Part shown: in pieces, positions 931 through 55,619 of the stretch
Position numbering within the stretch: position 1 is the first letter of the stretch
Layout of the letters: each line of letters starts with the position of its first letter
Source of the DNA: Dicyema japonicum
Lineage: Eukaryota; Animalia; Dicyemida
Assembly (NCBI GenBank): GCA_011109175.1
Contig: RDEW01000022.1
Location: 163,611-227,610, forward strand
DNA length: 64,000 nt
Direction: 5' to 3'
Translations under genes and position numbers: made by a program
The notes under the pieces: generated by a model
What the model saw: the letters and a program-made list of their open reading frames with translations, nothing else
Told to the model about the DNA's origin: nothing
Databases searched by the model: none

Positions 931-1426
931 TTAAATTTAATTATAATTAATTGATTTAATTTATAAAATGATAATAAAAAAAAAAAACTTGTCATCAACT
1001 GTCATGTCTCGTTCAATCAATAAGGTCATTGAAAAGATTAGACTGTTATTAGCAAATATCTTGGTGAATTTTATATCAACTCACGAATTTTCTATCAAAA
1101 GCTTTTTATGATTATTTTGTCTAAGAAACATTTCAAACTAAAAGTTCATTTTTATCACTATTTCAAAGGTTTTACTGTAAAAATATCTGTTTTTTTCATT
1201 CCATCTACTCACTCTGGGATCAATAGGTCACTAATCCTTATTTGAATATGATTTCTTTGCATTAGTGGAACATTAAAGTTTAAAAACTTATTTGATTTAT
1301 TGGATATCGTTTTCGAGTTAGGGGACAACTCACCTGTAGGCAAGTATCTTTACAGTACAAGACGTAGCTAACATATTCAAAATGTATCATAATTTTGATA
1401 CTGACATATTGAATTTTGAATGTTAG

Positions 1427-4400
1427 CGTGGTGTCATGTGGCTCATCAGAAATGGTGTCACCCATTCCAAAATGGAACGAAAAGAGCCAACAGCTTCTCC
1501 CCACCGTCCGGTGGTCCTCACATCTCCTGTGTCTTCGACCCTGTCTGGTGTCCCCATTTATCCAGACTTTTGATTCTTCTATGTGGGACGTCGAAACCAA
1601 TCCTGGTCCATGGAGAAGTTTTACAATTATACAACTGAATACGAATGGGATCAGGAAGAAAATCTTGAACTCCGGGCACTCCTCCGCGAAAATGAGGCTG
1701 ATCTCGCTTTTATACAGGAGTCCAAGCTATCTCCCTCCATTCCAACACTCTCTTTTCCCGGATACACAGTGATCCGTAAAGATTGTCAGGGAGGACGCGG
1801 AGGAGGACTACTTACTATTATAAAGAACGATGTTCCTTTTATGGATACAACTCAACGAACCTCAGAGCTTCTTGACTCCGACAAGACTTTGGAGCAGATT
1901 ACTGTCAAATCGAGTTATTCCCGTCCTTTTGGATACATTTGGCTAATTTAGATATTCCTCCACAAGGATCCTGTACGTCATCTTACACCCCTGATTTATC
2001 ACGCATTTCAACATTGAAAAATCTACTGTTATGTGGGGATCTTAATGCACGACATCCATTTTGGCTCATTTTCCCAATCCTCTGATAACCGATGATAACT
2101 CATTGCAAATTATCTTCATGACCTGATTATACTGAACAACCCTAACTCACATACGAGGACCCCATTAAGGATGACTGAAAGCTGCACATCCCCGACTTAC
2201 ACTATGCTCACCTTCTCTGGCTGGACTCATTTCCTGGAACGTCTTTTACGGCTTCTCCAGTGACCATAATTCAATCCTTCTAAAACTGAGAGGTCTTCGA
2301 CGATACAGGAGACGGCCGACGGAATCAAAAAGATTCAAGGATTATACGATGGTTGACTGGTCTGGTTTCAGTAACTTGTGGATAAATTCTTGGCCCGAAG
2401 ATTATCTTCCCCAATACGCTCTATTGATGAGGCCGCAGATATTATCAGCGCTGCCATTCGGAAAGCTGACCATATTTTTATTCCTATATCGTCATACAAG
2501 AAGTTTATTCCTACCCTCAGCTCTTATACAATAAGTCTTATAAAACAAAGAGACCGGCTGAAGAGATGCCATCTGTTGGACATGAAGTCTTTGACAGCCT
2601 CAACAAGGATCTCAGAGCATAAGAAAGGATCTGTCAGAGCATAAAAAAACAAGGACAAGAGATGGCAGCATCTAGTTAACCACCTCGAATAAAAGGATCT
2701 GTCAGAGCATAAAAGAACACAAGGACAAGAGATTGCAGCATCTAGTTAACCACCTCGACAGGAAAAGTACATCCCGACATTTCTGGAAAACTCTTAAACA
2801 AGTCAAGTCGGAACTGGATGATGCAGACGGAACCGGAAAGTCTTCTCCTGAACACTTATACCACCTACATCCTAACACCCTTATGAAACATTACGCTGGA
2901 ATTAGCTTCAAACCATTCTCGAAACACCTGGACATTAAGGTGCGTGCCCATAAACCGAAGAAGGAACCTTACCACGAACTATTCACAGATGACCAAGTCT
3001 TGGATGTGATCACCAGATTAAAGAGCTCACGGGCGTGCGGGCCTGACAAAGTATCTTCTATTCACCTAAAACACCTAAGCCACTACGCAATTGGCTACCT
3101 CACGCATATATACAACCTGTCCATTAACTATAATATTACTTCTCAAGATTTGGAAGAATTCTATTATCAGACCGATATTGAAGGCTGGAAAATCAGAGAC
3201 AGAACCTGCATCCTACAGGCCTATTTCCGTTACCAGCACACTATCAAAAATTATGGAGAAACTTGTATTATCAGTCATTATTCCGTATCTTCCGCGTCCT
3301 ATATTTCAACATGGTTTCCTCCGCGGTAGGTCCATCGCTACATACTTGGCAACTTTATCGCAGTTCATTGCCGACGGTTTTAACACCCATCCTCCGCCTC
3401 ACAAACGCACAATCTTGGTTTCTATTGACATCAACAAAGCCTTTGACACTGTTTCGAGGAAAATCTGGTTGGAACAATATTTTCTACTAATATTCGTCCG
3501 AATGTGAAATTATGGCTGGCCAACTTTTTGTCTGGAAGACGTGGAAGAGTAGTCAGTGGTGATCTCAGATCTAGATCACGATTACTACCGAACGGGGTAC
3601 CCCAGGGGTCTCCACTTTCACCAATTCTATTCAACCTATTCCTACACGACCTACCTAATGATGGAGACGAAGATTCCCTGCTATTATCCTACGCAGACGA
3701 TGTAGTCATTGCAATACGGAACCGCTTGACGCAAGTCGCATCCCTTAAAACTCAGACAAAATTGAACACTCTCCACGATTGGATTGTTGGCAATCGACTA
3801 ACGATTTCTTCAACCAAGTCTATCTGTTCCACATTCACGTCGGACCGTCGTTCCAAGGATGAACCGAGTATTTTTATTGGTCCCGCTCGGATTCCAGTGA
3901 CAAGGTCCCCCACTGTCCTTGGAGTCATGTACGACAGCCTTCTCAAATTCAACTCCCACGCAACAGACATGATCACCAGGGGCCTCAAGAAAGTTAACGT
4001 TATACGCGCCCTTGTTCAGAGGACCACTAGGAACATGGACTTTTCCGTTTCTACCATTTACCAACAAACAATCGCGCCTGCCATTGAGTATGCTTCCGTT
4101 GCATGGAGATTCGGGCTATCGGAGTCTATGGTCCAAAGAATCAACTCGATATACCGGAAAACAATCAGTATGCTTTCCCCACGTAATGGATCAACAGTCG
4201 ACCCACTACTCATGGAAGCTAAGATCCGTAGTCGTGGCTCCGGATTTCTTCGCGTCTGTGAGGAAGATGGAAATCCGCTTCGCCTGATCCTTTCCATGGC
4301 AAGAGAAAACCGATTGGATAAGAAATTCCCTCTCCGATCGGATTCCTCTGCAAGACCGAGAGAAGGCTCTTCCGGAAAGTAGCGGGGACGATGGAAGATC

Positions 4401-7500: not shown

Positions 7501-9974
7501 AAAACTACGAAAAAATCCAGCCCTCGTGGCAAGAATTTTAATGTAATGTAATTTAGAGTAATTACAGCTCACTTTCCTTCAAATTTCGTCGTTCGAATGC
7601 TTGAAGACTGTAATTTTGATATAAGGGGGATATTCCCTTTTGTCATATGGTGGGTAATATGGATTTTTCTGAAAAAAACGTAATTACCCCCATTTCCTTG
7701 CAATATAAATAAACAATGAATTTAAACATTAGCGTTAGCGTAATGACTTCGATGAATCATTACCATGGCGACTTTTTTTTACTTTATAAATCAGAAATTT
7801 TAATTTTTTGACTTTATGATAAATTTATCTACAAAAATTTTTTTAATATAAAAACTAATCAAAATCTTTTTTAAAATACGGAATATTTTAATTCAAAACG
7901 TTTTCGTGTTTATAATTTCTCTCTTTAGATAGTAATTTTACCAATAAGGAAAAACTTCTCTCAGCAGGTAATGTGGAAGGACATTTTTTCAGATAGTAGA
8001 GAAATATGTTGTATTTTTATTTTTTGTGCTAGAAAGCATTCGCTTCCAGATGCCTCCTGATTCTACATACATCGTCCTAGTAGTGCAATTCCTGAATGTG
8101 TTCAACAGCGTATTCTATTGTGAAAAAAGGTTTCTTCTGGCTTTTTTTATTGATTCACATATACAGTAATATTGGCATAACATTGCTGGTAAATTTGTAC
8201 AATTATCTGACAATTATTTCGAGTTAGCCTGAGAAGACAATGAGCAGCATGATCTGAAAAAATTTTCTTGAGCTTCTACTCAAGGAAGAGTCTTCAGTGA
8301 ATCTGACATTGTGATCTTACCCACAAATTAAAAAAAACGGCCGTCTGTTGATTCTGGCCTCGCTAAGTGGCCATCTAAAATTCTCCCGGTGTTTTAATCG
8401 CGAGATCCGACGCACTTCCTGTACGCCCGTGTTACACGTAGAAGTTTAAGAAGCGGCATTTGAAGTCTCGTTCTCCCTACAAGATCTCAGAATTGACGAA
8501 GATCAACTTTACGTGATAAACTACAGCCAAAACGACATCTATAGTCTTTATACTGACCAAAATTCGGGGATCTGTGACTAACACGTGGGTTTAAAAGACT
8601 ATTTGGGGCAGCCGAAATAGTTCTTTGTGAACTATTCAGTAGCTCCAAATAGTGGCTTTTAATGGAGTTTGAGAAAGATTATCCCTAACCCTAACCCATC
8701 CTTATCTGTTTTTCTTTATCAGAATAAATCAATTATTTTTGTTAAAAAACCTTTAATCCCCAGCTAGTCTTGTGGCTAGGATGTTATACATGTAACAAGG
8801 TTCTTTCATATGCTCTGTCCCTTTCTCGCTTATTCAATCAGCGTGGTGTCATGCGATCCATCTATTTTGGAAGACACTCAGTGATAAAGAATAGTATTTT
8901 CTTTCCCTTACACAACTGGATCATATTTTGGAGGGGTCACCTGTGGTTTACATGGACTTCTAAAAGTGGTTTTTTGGTTTTATCAAAGCTGCTTATATGT
9001 TTTAATTATTGCATCAATGAAGTTATCCTTATAAAAAATATAGAGTGTAAGTTAACTAAAAAACGACTTCCTATGATGTAGGAATTTTCTACGGGTCGGG
9101 GGGAGAAGCTTTTTTCTACATGTTCCGCAGAATTACATGTGGATTGTGATGCATGGTTTAATGTGGGTAAAGTAAACACATAAATTATGACACGTGGGTT
9201 GGGTAACAGTAAATTAAAATGTCCTAAAATTATTTCAAATTTGCCAACAAATTGTGAAAAAATAAAAAATATTGAATAACCAGAATTCTCTTAGACTTTG
9301 ATAACAGTCCATTACCGTATACAAAAATTTTGGATTTAGGTGAACCTTTCTCGCTGTTTTCTTTCATTAAAGTCAGATTATAGGGTTTATCATAATTATA
9401 TCGATAATTGTATAATTAATTACTATGATGATCATAGAGTTGGAGATAGAATTCCCCTTGGGGTCCAATAAACTTTCCATGTAGACACGGCATCTTTCAT
9501 TAGAAACGTGAACTTCTTGCTTTACCCACGATTTCTGATAATTTATGTTACTGATAGTTAGTTTAGTAACTCAGGCCTCACTAACCTGTAGGAGACCTAT
9601 TAAGTAGGACGCAGGAAATACCTGTCACTCACATAGATCGGTAATCTTGGCATTGTAGACGAACAGTGTACTAATTCAAATAAATGATCTGTTGTCAACT
9701 CAAAAAGGTTGCAGAAGGAACGTAGGACATCTTGTGCAGCATCCATTTTACATACGTACGTTTGTACAGGGGGTGATGGCCACATCTTAAAAGAGCCAGG
9801 GATACCAGGATGTCGATTGGAGGAAGGGGTAGGCGTATGTAACTAAGATAATTAAATTGATAACCAAATTAAAGAAATTTTTTTATTTTAGTAATCATTG
9901 AATATCTAACTCCGGAGACTCCTAATATCTGTGCAACATTTAAAACCATCTCACTATTCCCAACTTCAGTAGGT

Positions 9975-14584: not shown

Positions 14585-17000
14585 CTAATTAAGTGATCCC
14601 GGTACGCCTCAACAGGATCGAGAGGTTTTTCCTGTGTTCCTCCAGAGTACCCACGGCTTTCCTGAATAGACGACGATCATCTTTCATTAGAGTTTGAAGA
14701 GGAGTGGGTTTTTTCCCCAAATTTCGTGTATTTGAGGCCTTTAGCCTTGAATGGAAGAAACGACTTGTTTCTTGGCCACACAGACAGATGAAGCCGGAGC
14801 CATTATTTTTGATTGCGGCGTGGTCAAGCATTGGAGGGAAAAGATCGGGGGGTAGATTCGTTTGACGTGCTAGTTTTCCAATTAGGGTATTGATCTTGAG
14901 TGAATTTGATATCGAAGCTCCATAGGCCCATGAGGCACAGGCGTACTCAATCGTCGGTTTTAGGAGTTGATTGAACACGACGAGGGCGCATTCCTGTGAA
15001 GGTTTGGACTTCAAGAGCGGTTTGATAATATTAAGTTTCCTGAGACCCTTTGTCATAACGTTCTTCACATGTTGAGAAAATGTCATCAAAGGGTCAAATG
15101 TCACTCCCAGGATAGTTGGACGAGTCTGTAGTGGTAAGGAGTCTCCAAAAATGTTCAAATCAAGTGTATGTTTTTCTTTTCTGTCCGTGGTGAAAATTGT
15201 ATATGTTGATTTGTCCCTGGATACGGAGAGACGATTCATCTTCAACCAGGCTCCCAGGTCGTCAATATGTGACTGGAGCTCTGATTTTGCTGTACCCACG
15301 TATTTGTTCCTGCTAGCGATGATTAGGTCGTCAGCATAAGTGAGAAGCATTGAATCTGGTCCTCCAGGGCAGGGTAAATCGTTGAGGAACAAGTTGAATA
15401 ATGCCGGAGAGAGGGGCGATCCTTGAGGGACGCCATTTGGTAGGAGACGGGACCTCGATCTTGCCTGGCCTATACAGACACGTCCTCTTCTTCCGGAGAG
15501 AAAATTGGCTATCCATCTTTTCAAATCCGTCTGAATGGTGGTGCCAAAAACCTCCTTCGTGAGTAATGTTCTCGAGACAGAATCGAACGCCTTTTGGATA
15601 TCCAGGGAAACCACTATTGTCCGTAGATGGCGTTTCGGTACGTTGAACCCTTCTGATATAAATTGAGACAGTGAAGTCAAATGTGTCGTAGTTGAACGCT
15701 CACATTTGAAACCATGTTGTAAGTGGCAGTCGGGCAAATGGGGTTTAATTTTCCAGAGTACGAGTTCTCCATTAAGCGCGATAATGCGCACGTTAATGAA
15801 ATTGGACAGTAGGAAGAAGGTAAGGTTTTCGGTTTTCATGGTTTAAGGATTGGTATTATAAGTGAGTTTTTCCATTTGCATGGGATGACGTTCATGTTCG
15901 AAGATAAATTAAAAATTGACGTAATCGAATTGATTGCAACATTATCAAGGTGTTTTAGCAAAATTCCCGGAATATCGTCAGGATACACGTATAAGATCTT
16001 TTCATCGATCTTATAGCCTGTGTGACCTCGACATGCGTATATAAATTGATCCACGAAGTTGGTTTAGGCATTAAATTCCTAAGGTGACAAGAATGTGATT
16101 TCGAGAAGTCCTTGTGACTTATGGATGCGTAGTATTTCATTAGATTGTTAGCTTGAACAGTATTTTGAGCAGAAAAAGATTCTGATTCATCTGATAAGTT
16201 TAGCTTGATTCGACGAATAGTTTTCCATAAAAGACTCGTAGATTTCATATGTCCAATAGATGATAATAGCCACTTCCACGCCTTATCTTTCTTTTCTCTG
16301 ATGAACTTTGTAATTCTCTGATTTAAGCATTTTATATTTTCCAAATCAGAAGAGGTTTGCAGATGATTCATCTTCAGTGAGTTTTTTTGTTTGACAATTC
16401 TCAGAGTCCAGAGAAGGCTAGTGGGATTTGTAAACTGCACGTGGTTCAAACAACTTTTCAGCAGGAAGGAATACATGGTTTAGATGGTCCACTGCTTTGT
16501 CGATGGAGCAAAATGAAGTGGGATCACAATAGAAATTTGTTCCGCGGTCTTGTGTAGAATTAAATAATCCACTTGCGAGCTCACATCGTGAAAGGATAAA
16601 ACGTTTTTAATAATGGTGAGTAAGCCGCAACCACGTACAATGCTGTCTTTTCTGATAGAGATGTATCCAGGAAAAATTGGGGTTGTACTGTTTGTAGAAA
16701 GTTTTGACTCCTGGATAAGGCAGATATCAGTCTTGTGCTTGGCTAATAAACATCATAACTCTAGAATCTTTGTTTTTATTCCGCTAGCATTGAGTTGCAT
16801 AATAACATGGGGTTTTGGTTCAGGCTTTTGTTCAATATCTCCAGAAAGCAATGGAATTCAGGGGAACAAACAACATCTCTAGTTTCCAGTTGAGGTATAC
16901 GATCCAGGCATAAGGAGTCTGGATGGGAAAGAGCAAATGGTTTTTTTTGGTGTATTATTACACTGAGGGCCACCACAAAGGTGAACCACATGACGCCACG
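14523..17000 (-). mobile_element. Ingi/Vingi-like LINE with internal deletion (head, decayed 2A, EN, RT, tail)
   Basis: Head CGTGGCGTCATGTGGTTCACC at 17000. LLSGDIEQKPEP at 16816-16851. QLNASG and IQESKL. RT ORF 14589-15839 (DIQKAFDSV, GVPQGSPLSP, YADD). (TAAA)n tail. Confidence 0.9.
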
Positions 17001-33900: not shown

Positions 33901-34328
33901 TTCATCACCTCACCAAAAATCGTGGTATCATAAATTATAGAAAAATAGTTGAATTTTTTTTGTTTGTTTTCTGTATTTTCTATTTCTCTCTATTAATGTG
34001 ACGATCCATTTTCTAGGTTGCGCCCAGTGCCTGGCAGGTATATAACAGGATCATTAACTTTCCTCCAATCCACTGGACGGGTTTCCACAACTGCAAGTTA
34101 TACGATTCCTTCTATTCTGATTACGGATCGACTCTGTTTCTGTAGAAGTAGAAAATGTATCCACTTAATTAGTTGTTTCCCAAAATAGCAGGATTCGAGA
34201 GACTTTACTGTATTTATTTAAAAATCGTAATAAAATATCTATTATTATTGATATTTATAATAATTAAATAAAAAATAATGTCAAAAATTAAAATATAATA
34301 AACTTTGACCTAATAAAATTTAGATTAA

Positions 34329-39500: not shown

Positions 39501-40125
39501 GATTATATCATTTTCGCCTCGTAGTGCTACGATGCTAATTTGTTTGAGGTTTTCTGTTCGTTTTGTCTGTTCTTCCTCTTCTCCTTCCTACTTGAGTGGC
39601 GTCATGGGATCAACCTGTCTAGGTGTCACCCAGTGCCAGGCTGGCATTAAAAAGGTTCATTTGCTCTCCCCACTTCACTGGAAAGATTTCCATTACTTCA
39701 AGAATTGACGTCTTTTACCTTTTTTTTTAGATGGACTTGTTTGACTTTGAGGTATCAGAAGACATTGAGCAAAGGACCCTGAATTCTCAGCATACGCAGT
39801 ATTCAGACATTGTGATGATAACTGGGGACCTTTCAAATTCAATTATCTTTTTTCATAAAGGATTTCATCCCTGTCTTCTAAGAGATAAAGTTCTTCTCAA
39901 CTCCAAGTCGGCTTGTTGTCCACTGCTGCAAACCGTGTCAAGACATGGTTTAACTCAATCTGGGGCTAAATAACATTTGAACTTGCAATCACTTAAATCA
40001 TATTTAACGATTAGTTATTTTTTCATTTCTGTGGGTATAGCTCTTTTTCAAACACTAAATTATATCCATGCCACCAAATCCACACTTCTTAGTTACTTCG
40101 TGTCCTGTATGACAAACGGCATGTA

Positions 40126-53321: not shown

Positions 53322-53720
53322 GTGCGTCATGCGATTCACCATCTCAAATTTTCGATGTGGTTCACCTTCACGTGGAGAAAAATGGATGCCCGTATTAAAC
53401 TGGCAACTAAAAGAACCACTTCTATTCTTTTGTCAACCTTTTCAACGACCTCTGGGAAGTCGGACTGGATGATGGCGGCTATTGAGCGGGCGCGTAGCTT
53501 TCGCTCCAAAAGATCGGATTAGCTACTCCTAATCCTAGCTGGGGAAATCGAAAATAACCCCGGGCCCCATAAAACGGGAAATTCCTAAACATCATGCAAT
53601 TTAGCATAAACGGCCTCACATAAAATTAAATGAACTTTTTGCATTTCTAACTTCCCACAAAATTGATATTTCCATGCTACAGGAAACAAAACTATCAAGA
53701 AAGTCAGCGCTTCCACACTG
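53322..53720 (+). mobile_element. 5' fragment of another 2A-LINE
   Basis: Head GCGTCATG, HDV-like motif, LLLILAGEIENNPGP at 53523-53567, and EN start (QFSING, LQETKL). Confidence 0.8.
53347..53418 (+). ncRNA. HDV-like ribozyme candidate
   Basis: P1 AAUUUUC/GAAAAAU (1 mismatch), P2 UGGUUC/GAACCA, P3 CC/GG around L3 UUCACGU, P1.1 GG, P4 UGCC..GGCA, J4/2 ACUAA with the putative catalytic C. Confidence 0.65.
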
Positions 53721-54962
53721 TCCTTGCCAGGTTTTGATATTGGGCGTATGCGGGAAATTTTCCAAATCGTAGGGATGGAATTCATTTCAAAGAATAGTTG
53801 AAAATAAGGGAGATTACCGCAATAGTAACCGGTCCAAGGTGTTTAAGAAGTATTGAAGGGATGCCATCTGGACCACAAGAGCGGGAGGGATTAATCATCT
53901 TCAAGCCTTCGAATACGTTTGAATGAAAATAAAGGTGATCGGCGGGATTAGGTCTCATCGAATGAAGGTTTTGTGACTTATACCAGTATAATACTTCATT
54001 AGTTTATTTAAGCTGTGTTGGTCTGTCTTTTGTTTCGAGGTGGAGTTTGTAGTTGAAGAAAGAAACAGTTGTTTTTGGATGATAGAGAAATTTTTTGAAT
54101 CGAATGATTATTGGATTATGATCGGAGGATAATCCGTAATGTACTGTCCATGAAATGTTGGATCCAAGAGTAGATGAACAGAAAGTGATGTCGGGGGGAT
54201 GTAGATGAGTCACCTTCTTTGAATGGAGTTCTCGTATGCATAGTGGAGCTGTTGAGGATTGTCATGAAAAAAAGTTGGTTTATTAAAGATAGTCATCTTG
54301 AGTCAGTTGTTTGTGATTTCAACCAGGCAGGGTGCTTTGCATTAAAATCTCCACAAAGTATTAGGTTTACTAGGTTGTTTAGTCTGGATAAGTCCAACAA
54401 GAATCCTTTCGGGCAAGAGGACGGAGATATATGTTGGCAATTTTGAGAGTACTCGATCCGTTTGATATTGAAATTCCGGAGATTTCCGTGGTCCCATCGT
54501 TAGTTAGCGACTTAAGTTCAGCGGATATGTCAGAATAACGGAGGTTCTCTCTGATGATGGTAAGAAGGCTTCCACCGAGGCGGTTCGGGCGATCTAGGCG
54601 GATGCAGTCGAAACCTGGAAAATGAGGAGTAGTCGCGCACTGAGTCAACTTGCTTTCTTGAAGCAGGATCACGTCTATGTTTTGGTTGTTTGTGAAGGAT
54701 CGTAATTCGAGAATTTTACTCTTTATTCCGTTGATGTTAATCTGCAGAATTGAAAGTTGGAGACCAGGGTTGAGCTCGATGTCGCCAGAGAGTAGTAGAA
54801 GGATCCCATTGAGAGTTGAAGGAAGCCGTCCGAAGGAACCAACTTCGGATAGGGGTGAGCAAATGGTCCTTTTCCTAGGTGCATTAGGTGCACCCTGAGC
54901 GCCTCCAGAAACATAATGACTGGTGGACCACATGACGCCACGTTTAAATTATTCATCATTTA

Positions 54963-55041
54963 TTATTATTATTTAATAACTCCGAAAAGGGAACACCAAG
55001 AAAGAAGGAGTAAGCCAACTAATTAAGTGATCCCGGTACGG
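54963..55041 (-). mobile_element. 79-nt LINE 3'-end insertion flanked by a 29-bp direct repeat
   Basis: Matches the 3' end of the 14.5-kb element. Flanks GACGCCACGTTTAAA(T/A)TATTCATCATTTA at 54934-54962 and 55042-55070. Confidence 0.8.
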
Positions 55042-55619
55042 GACGCCACGTTTAAAATATTCATCATTTAAAATTCATAAATAATTTTATTCAAATAATT
55101 ATTTTTGTTAAAAAAAATTCAGATATATTATTTGTCGCGTGGTGCCATTTGGTGGATAGTTTGTCATTGGCTCAAAATTATTTTCTTTCCTTCCGATGGC
55201 GTCACTGGATCCACCTCACTGAGGGGGCACCCAATGCTTGGCCCGCATCAAGAGGATACAACAACGTCGCTAGCTGGTGACAAGTTCTGGAATGCTGGAG
55301 CAAGTCAGGATAGAGGAGTTGGTTAGTTTGGGTACTCTTAGTCTTTGGAAATAATTTTAATTTAATGAATTTTTTAACGAGAACTTCGATTAAAAACGAT
55401 ATGTTTTTGCCGGAATGTCGCAGTGTCCTAACTGTTGGATAATTTCCTGATGGTCCCGGATTCAAATATCGTTGTTATACGTTCCGGCTGAAGGTTCCAC
55501 ACATCTGCTATGCTTTGAATATGACAAGTGAGACCGTTATCAGTGAGCGCTTCATTAAGTAACCGATCGTCTGCTATGGACATGTACGCAACAAAAAAAA
55601 GTTAAAGAACATTCTTGGC

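Follow-up and report, generated by a model that had tools for sequence, protein, structure and literature searches.

The window analysed here, a stretch of 64,000 nucleotides from Dicyema japonicum, carries on both strands a recurrent RNA motif, referred to below as the variant fold, at the heads of LINEs (Table 1). The carriers are single-ORF APE+RT LINEs with an N-terminal 2A, together with ~330-bp non-autonomous derivatives, and the fold spans roughly the 65-80 nt that come directly after a short leader. In the family C1 copy, the ORF that opens at the AUG of J1/2 encodes a leader peptide of ~45 aa, the 2A-like sequence DIELNPG(L) and the N-terminus of an endonuclease.

Table 1. Features of the 64,000-nt window, with positions counted from its first nucleotide
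Feature	Position	Strand	Basis or remarks
Family A head	1420-1489	+	Conserved 8-nt leader ATGTTAGC (1420-1427), then fold
Variant fold, family A	1428-1489	+	Sequence
Variant fold, family J, full length	8843-8923	+	Perfect P1 GGUGUC/GACACU, long P4
Variant fold, family B	16938-16999	-	Sequence; nearest variant to the canonical Z head in sequence
5'-truncated copy, without P1 and J1/2	34000-34054	+	
F-like class II fold	39596-39659	+	Preceded by a pyrimidine-rich spacer, ~39540-39595
Predicted canonical HDV-like ribozyme head, family Z	53347-53418	+	2A motif downstream, ~53520-53570
ORF from J1/2 AUG, family C1	54379-54933	-	Translation; Pfam Exo_endo_phos on the homologous family A ORF
Variant fold, family C1	54864-54941	-	Sequence; matched by covariance model R1
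Family H class II head	55136-55259	+	Module 1 (55136-55155), spacer, fold
Variant fold, family H, class II	55198-55259	+	Sequence

Family A consists of young copies (98-99% identical across ~3.0 kb), in which a single frame encodes a leader peptide, the 2A sequence GDVETNPGP, an APE endonuclease and a reverse transcriptase. At locus L066, LLILLCGDVETNPGP, which conforms to the N-terminal motif D(V/I)ExNPGP, is followed in one frame by the Pfam domains Exo_endo_phos and RVT_1, which identifies the element as a 2A-bearing single-ORF APE-type LINE. The closest named relative is the polymerase of an insect 'X-element'. Because this relative is only 29% identical, the carriers are placed loosely in the Jockey/CR1/I group.

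The heads come in two architectures. Class I heads (families A-E, G, I and J) consist of 6-9 family-specific nucleotides and GU, followed by the fold. Class II heads (F, H, K and others) open with a 5' module that contains three CRYGTGG boxes, and a spacer rich in pyrimidines, 35-85 nt long, separates this module from the fold. Module 1 of the family H head in the window is a degenerate CGCGTGG..CATGTGG box. Among class II modules (loci L082-L112, and 55136-55155(+) in the window) the boxes read CGCGTGG, CCATGTGG, GCGTGG or ACGTGG and are E-box-like. The commonest type is F, with 608 exact P1-P2 matches in the genome. The F element at L071:95-423 is non-autonomous and ~330 bp long, with a LINE head (module 1, spacer and fold) joined to a LINE tail, in which a GC-rich box precedes an (ATAAA)n-like sequence. 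A local partial duplication affects the C1 head: its initial 8 nt, together with the flank upstream, are present two times in the window, at 54934-54960 and 55041-55070, ~107 bp apart.

The motif was located at every position at which the earlier note had placed it. Of the copies described there as partial, the one at ~35461(+) is indeed 5'-truncated, whereas that of family J is full length. The 11-nt leader pattern occurs seven times in the window, against 0.99 expected. Across the 67.5-Mb assembly, GTGGYGTCATGKGG has 242 matches against 1 for the reversed control, and the class II pattern (P2 = GAUCC) has 1,120 against 4. Class I heads number 275 genome-wide when counted as GGYGTCATGKGG sites; with the 1,120 class II heads this brings the variant heads to ~1,400 copies, set against 1-4 matches of the reversed patterns. 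In a genome search that scored the best 150 candidates, and so took in the less divergent families, a covariance model built from 24 copies, R1, returned E<1e-7 for all 150; its match G000:C135:218472-218553 is the family C1 copy of the window. Pattern counts and R1 matches together identify the motif as a large repeat family, not a chance match. No R1 match was found in three LINE relatives with 33-50% protein identity, and the contigs of three further relatives end before the 5' end.

The helices follow the order of HDV ribozymes. In family C1, GU is followed by P1 (GGCGUC), J1/2 (AUG), P2, A, P3 with an 11-nt loop, A, P1' (GGCGCU) and CA; the 3' part comprises a 7-bp P4, an A-rich J4/2 without C, and P2'. 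In family A, P1 GGUGUC faces P1' GUCACC, with one U-A compensatory pair and one U-U mismatch. All alignments contained natural copies only, with family-level independence of ~12-15 families. In them the nested double pseudoknot P1-P2-P3-P1'-P4-P2' is 83-90% paired, compared with 33-58% when the partners are slid. On the MAFFT alignment of 24 copies (A1), 90.1% of the cells of P1, P2 and P3 are paired, compared with 36-54% for slid partners, and four of the six P2 pairs show double changes. When 97 copies were aligned to the model, an alignment fitted to P2 and P3 and not to P1, pairing reached 89.3% against 35-43% for slid partners, and P2 was compensatory in five of six pairs.

P1 and P4 vary in different ways. 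In the 97 copies the 5' strand of P1 is nearly fixed as GGCGUC, and P1' changes only in ways that preserve pairing, with Y facing G1, R facing U5 and G or A facing C3/U3; the P1 pair 7/139 is C-G in 62 copies and U-A in 7. P4 is wholly different among families (UUCCA/UGGAA, GUGUA/UACAC, GUGCC/GGCAC, AUGCC/GGCAU, with longer stems in C-E) and covaries at four of five pairs in the short-loop class. These compensatory substitutions change the sequence of the leader peptide, so it is the RNA that is under constraint. Folding by MFE, a method that cannot model pseudoknots, gave z-scores near 0 for most copies, as a pseudoknot would lead one to expect. In all families a second hairpin lies ~10 nt 3' of P2' (for example at 54825-54855(-), after UUUGCUC..CCCC). 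Its stems differ by family (CCACC/GGUGG, CCAUCCAG/CUGGAUGG, CCGAAG/CUUCGG and CUCCA/UGGAG), which suggests a further covarying helix.

The catalytic core of known HDV ribozymes is altered in these heads. In the comparison with Rfam that the earlier note had proposed, the variants matched no ribozyme family at the gathering threshold or at E<=10, in searches whose queries were the full window, a 121-nt section, eight loci and 201 nt of family B; they fall outside the curated models HDV, CPEB3, drz-Agam and HDV-F-prausnitzii. Twister and twister-sister identities were rejected, as there is no Rfam match and the helix order is unlike that of twister. The variant L3 is 4-15 nt long (AGAAAC, UUUUGU, GUCU, UACUG and loops of 11-13 nt, for example), with no sequence likeness or constraint between families and no conserved U/C/G pattern. 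The conserved L3 of ~7-8 nt with a U...G pair (U20/G25) and C residues is not found, and the U...G pair is missing in families A, F and D. In place of GG, J1/4 is CA in 65 of 74 copies, and the A of this CA is present in all 91 aligned copies, suggesting a core role for the near-invariant dinucleotide. The claims made from the window alone, namely the HDV helix order, the covarying stems, the variable L3 and constant CA, and the loss of the canonical L3 signature and of GG after P1', are thus borne out across the families by the alignments and helix counts.

A two-pair P1.1 between L3 and the two nucleotides after P1' is not found. A replacement P1.1 of the form UG:CA was considered, as UG occurs in L3 in 51 of 74 copies against 35.6 after shuffling, the copies not being independent of one another. 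This candidate was rejected because the UG partner, although enriched and present in many families, has no fixed position and is absent in A, C1 and D. The UG in L3 may be a relic of the canonical CG.

J4/2 is A-rich, and a candidate catalytic C stands at its start in families A, B, C2, D, E, F, H and K; it is missing in C1 (AGGAAAA) and at locus L053. In most families J4/2 reads CGAAAA, CAAAAA or CAAGA and the first pair is G1-U or G1-C, as in active HDV-like ribozymes; the G1-U wobble is seen in 16 of 23 rows of the MAFFT alignment. Structures published in 2026 include fast HDV-like ribozymes in which P1.1 is U:A plus C:U or U:U, and the L3 change G25A abolishes cleavage in a studied HDV-like ribozyme (PMC13635239). 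Active ribozymes with a non-GC P1.1 being known, the loss of GG alone is no proof of inactivity, and the missing L3 U...G pair of families A, F and D weighs more.

A canonical HDV-like ribozyme appears to head family Z, a sister family of 2A-LINEs in the same genome; a literature search found no report of such a head in dicyemids. The Z head reads P1 AAUUUUC, J1/2 GAUG, P2 UGGUUC, A, CC, L3 UUCACGU, GG, A and P1', followed by GG, a 6-bp P4, J4/2 CUAAAA and P2' GAACCA. Most copies have GAAAAUU as P1' and thereby form seven Watson-Crick pairs in P1; in the copy of the window P1' is mutated. The family has ~69 genome copies. It aligns end to end with Rfam RF02682 at 13.5 bits, which is below threshold, and an equal 201-nt search with family B gave no RF02682-type match. 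In 25 independent copies, conservation starts exactly at the first nucleotide of P1 (0.84-1.0 per position), with the upstream bases at background (0.28-0.60). The 5' end of Z elements therefore lies at the predicted cleavage site 5' of P1, and copies that start at the cut site are the classical signature of a LINE template RNA cut by its own HDV-like ribozyme (PMC3774820).

The variant fold is homologous to this canonical head. Z and family B share AUG-UGGUUC-A-CC...GG...C(N)AAAA-GAACCA and the peptide start MWFTF, in the same register, and the variants also share with Z the 2A and a related endonuclease, that of Z showing 33-47% identity to its counterparts in families A and C1. Unlike the variants, Z has L3 UUCACGU, GG after P1', a P1 of AAUUUUC/GAAAAUU and copies that start at the first P1 nucleotide, with unrelated flanks. 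Upstream of three Z copies (at 53322-53346(+) in the window, and at L121 and L122) lies a common piece similar to the beginning, P1-J1/2-P2, of F-type heads (GAGTGCGTCATGYGATTCACC); an F-type piece fused to the canonical Z ribozyme, as a chimera or a nested insertion, would be a possible origin.

In the variants, the element does not begin at a cut site 5' of P1. G1 is preceded by GT in 242 of the 275 class I heads, and T stands at -1 in 263 of them. Upstream of the would-be cut there are 6-9 nt of family-specific sequence in class I and ~60-100 nt in class II. The family leaders are conserved to -8/-9 in A and C and past -14 in F, H and K, and the exact six spacer bases before G1 are kept in 490 of 608 F copies. 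A search of sequencing runs for the element returned four, all from one study and none recorded as RNA; their assembled contigs, which behave as DNA, part from the family A sequence 7-9 nt upstream of GTGG and not at G1. Target-site duplications measure 11-12 bp, with 13-35 extra AT-rich bases between the duplication and the conserved 5' end. These extra bases differ between copies at the junctions of L066, L068 and L071, and those of L066 are in part repeats of target DNA close by. Alternative P1 registers that would cut at the true 5' boundary were sought by eye and rejected, no complement to the leaders (ATGTTAGC, TTAAAC, CCGC) being present beside P3. The retained upstream sequence implies that the reverse-transcribed RNA was not cut at the ancestral site, and the variant fold probably no longer trims the RNA 5' end.

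The fold is closely associated with start codons. An in-frame AUG lies inside it in families B-E, G, H and K, either in J1/2 or, in H and K, at the first base of P4; the J1/2 of family H is ACU. The motif-internal ATG is the start of the leader-2A-endonuclease ORF in B and C, and not in A, F and H. In family A the 2A-endonuclease frame has its ATG at element nucleotides 1-3, 11 nt upstream of G1 (L066:6800-7396(-); 1420-1427 in the window), and the AUG of J1/2 opens another frame, which stops after 45 codons. Cleavage at G1 would thus detach the family A start codon from its ORF. In the non-coding F elements the J1/2 AUG is directly followed by UGA.

Two services to LINEs are ascribed to HDV-like ribozymes, the trimming of co-transcripts and the promotion of translation, and work by Ruminski et al. 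in 2011 reportedly indicated that HDV-like folds promote translation initiation of LINE ORFs. On balance, we think it probable that the variant fold is a ribozyme-derived double pseudoknot that has ceased to set the 5' end of the RNA and persists as a cis-acting 5' module surrounding the start codon. Its ancestor would have been a canonical HDV-like ribozyme homologous to the Z head. In the variant lineages P1 would have been re-set to GGCGUC, the L3 core would have decayed to a loop of 4-15 nt, GG in J1/4 would have become CA, and an upstream leader or promoter-like module would have been gained. With a start site of its own, the element would no longer need excision from a host co-transcript, and the fold could be retained as a non-cleaving cis element of the RNA. 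We infer, with moderate confidence, that its role is in ribosome loading or start-site choice, which it would organise on an AUG embedded in, or <20 nt from, the structure; the leader peptide encoded by the structure would be discarded by 2A. Alternatively, the fold may act as an RNP handle or 5' stabiliser. The earlier note had left the choice between a derived ribozyme and a repurposed fold. The derivation part is supported by the same-register homology to canonical Z, and the sequence kept upstream of G1 favours a repurposed fold over active 5' processing.

It is unlikely that the fold has remained a self-cleaving ribozyme of the HDV type whose core was rebuilt, with CA standing in for GG and an unconstrained L3. 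Cleavage at G1 would then strip off the capped leader and leave an RNA that is translation-competent or regulated, and only uncleaved RNA would be reverse-transcribed. The shared topology, the frequent G1-U wobble, a J4/2 that starts with C-purine-A in most families and the descent from a canonical ribozyme are all consistent with activity, as is the occurrence of a weak non-GC P1.1 in active ribozymes (PMC13635239). The near-invariant CA and the enrichment of UG in L3, in copies that are not independent, likewise count against a non-cleaving fold. However, a start at G1 is conceivable for no more than 4% of class I copies, while Z copies do start at the cut site, and the cis-preference of LINEs predicts G1-starting copies from cleaved RNAs that are translated. 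The cut would also part the in-frame AUG of family A from its ORF; C1 lacks the J4/2 C; no Rfam model matches; and the L3 U...G pair is absent in A, F and D, while G25A abolishes activity in a studied ribozyme (PMC13635239).

The main alternative among the non-catalytic readings, which we judge improbable as a whole account, is an RNA whose role is mainly not in translation: a protein-bound 5' handle, likened to the 5' protein-binding pseudoknot of R2, or a barrier against 5'-3' decay, without which in cis no full-length copies would be made. Perfect P1, P2 and P4 are kept in the ~330-bp non-coding F elements, the most numerous class, and the second hairpin just downstream also appears to covary. 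The persistence of the fold in these non-coding elements fits poorly with a translation role and better with an RNP handle or stabiliser. However, a link to translation is suggested by the start codon that each coding family has within the fold or next to it. APE-type LINEs, moreover, are known to recognise their own 3' ends and are not known to recognise their 5' ends.

Also improbable is a new catalytic version of the HDV fold that works without canonical L3 and P1.1 and cuts only part of the transcripts at G1. If such partial cutting took place, the transcript pool would split into an uncapped, fold-driven mRNA and an uncleaved transposition template. Finally, it is very unlikely that there is no selected RNA structure and that shared descent, a DNA promoter motif (GTGGCGTCATGTGG, E-box-like) and the coding constraint of the leader peptide explain the pattern, since the near-invariant 5' strand of P1, which also occurs without the fold as module 1 at class II 5' ends, and the insignificant single-sequence MFE z-scores of most copies, from a method blind to pseudoknots, are outweighed by compensatory double changes in P2 (5/6), in P4 (4/5) and in one P1 pair that alter the encoded amino acids, and by the loss of pairing in slid controls.

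The cis-acting module favoured above has close counterparts among known systems. HDV-like ribozymes at the 5' ends of non-LTR elements (R2, L1TcRz in the Pr77 of L1Tc/ingi, and others) form the same nested double pseudoknot with equal helix order, occupy the element head upstream of or over the ORF start, have G at +1 with G-U or G-C as the first pair, and have a J4/2 rich in A, most often with C as its first base. The dicyemid heads further resemble that of L1Tc in that a 2A comes next and that non-autonomous derivatives have retained them (PMC4035085, PMC3774820). Unlike those ribozymes, the variants have a free L3 of 4-15 nt, CA for GG and 6-100 nt of element upstream of P1, and match no Rfam family. 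Degenerate Pr77 signatures are found in the SIDER elements of trypanosomatids; here, however, the altered core also prevails in autonomous, recently active LINEs, and the four dicyemid helices are actively maintained by covariation. In Schistosoma mansoni, the heads of Perere-3 LINEs bear a twister T-variant ribozyme, with target-site duplications beside the cleavage site, and cleavage enables translation (PMC8501958). The dicyemid heads are similar in placing a ribozyme-type element at the LINE 5' end; their fold is different, and a gap of 13-35 nt separates their target-site duplications from the conserved 5' end downstream, the distance to G1 being larger still.

A canonical Z head and ~1,400 derived heads in one genome constitute a natural separation-of-function pair, which makes a non-cutting role of the HDV fold directly testable. 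The pair also suggests a route by which a promoter-less LINE processed by its own ribozyme may become a self-promoted one.
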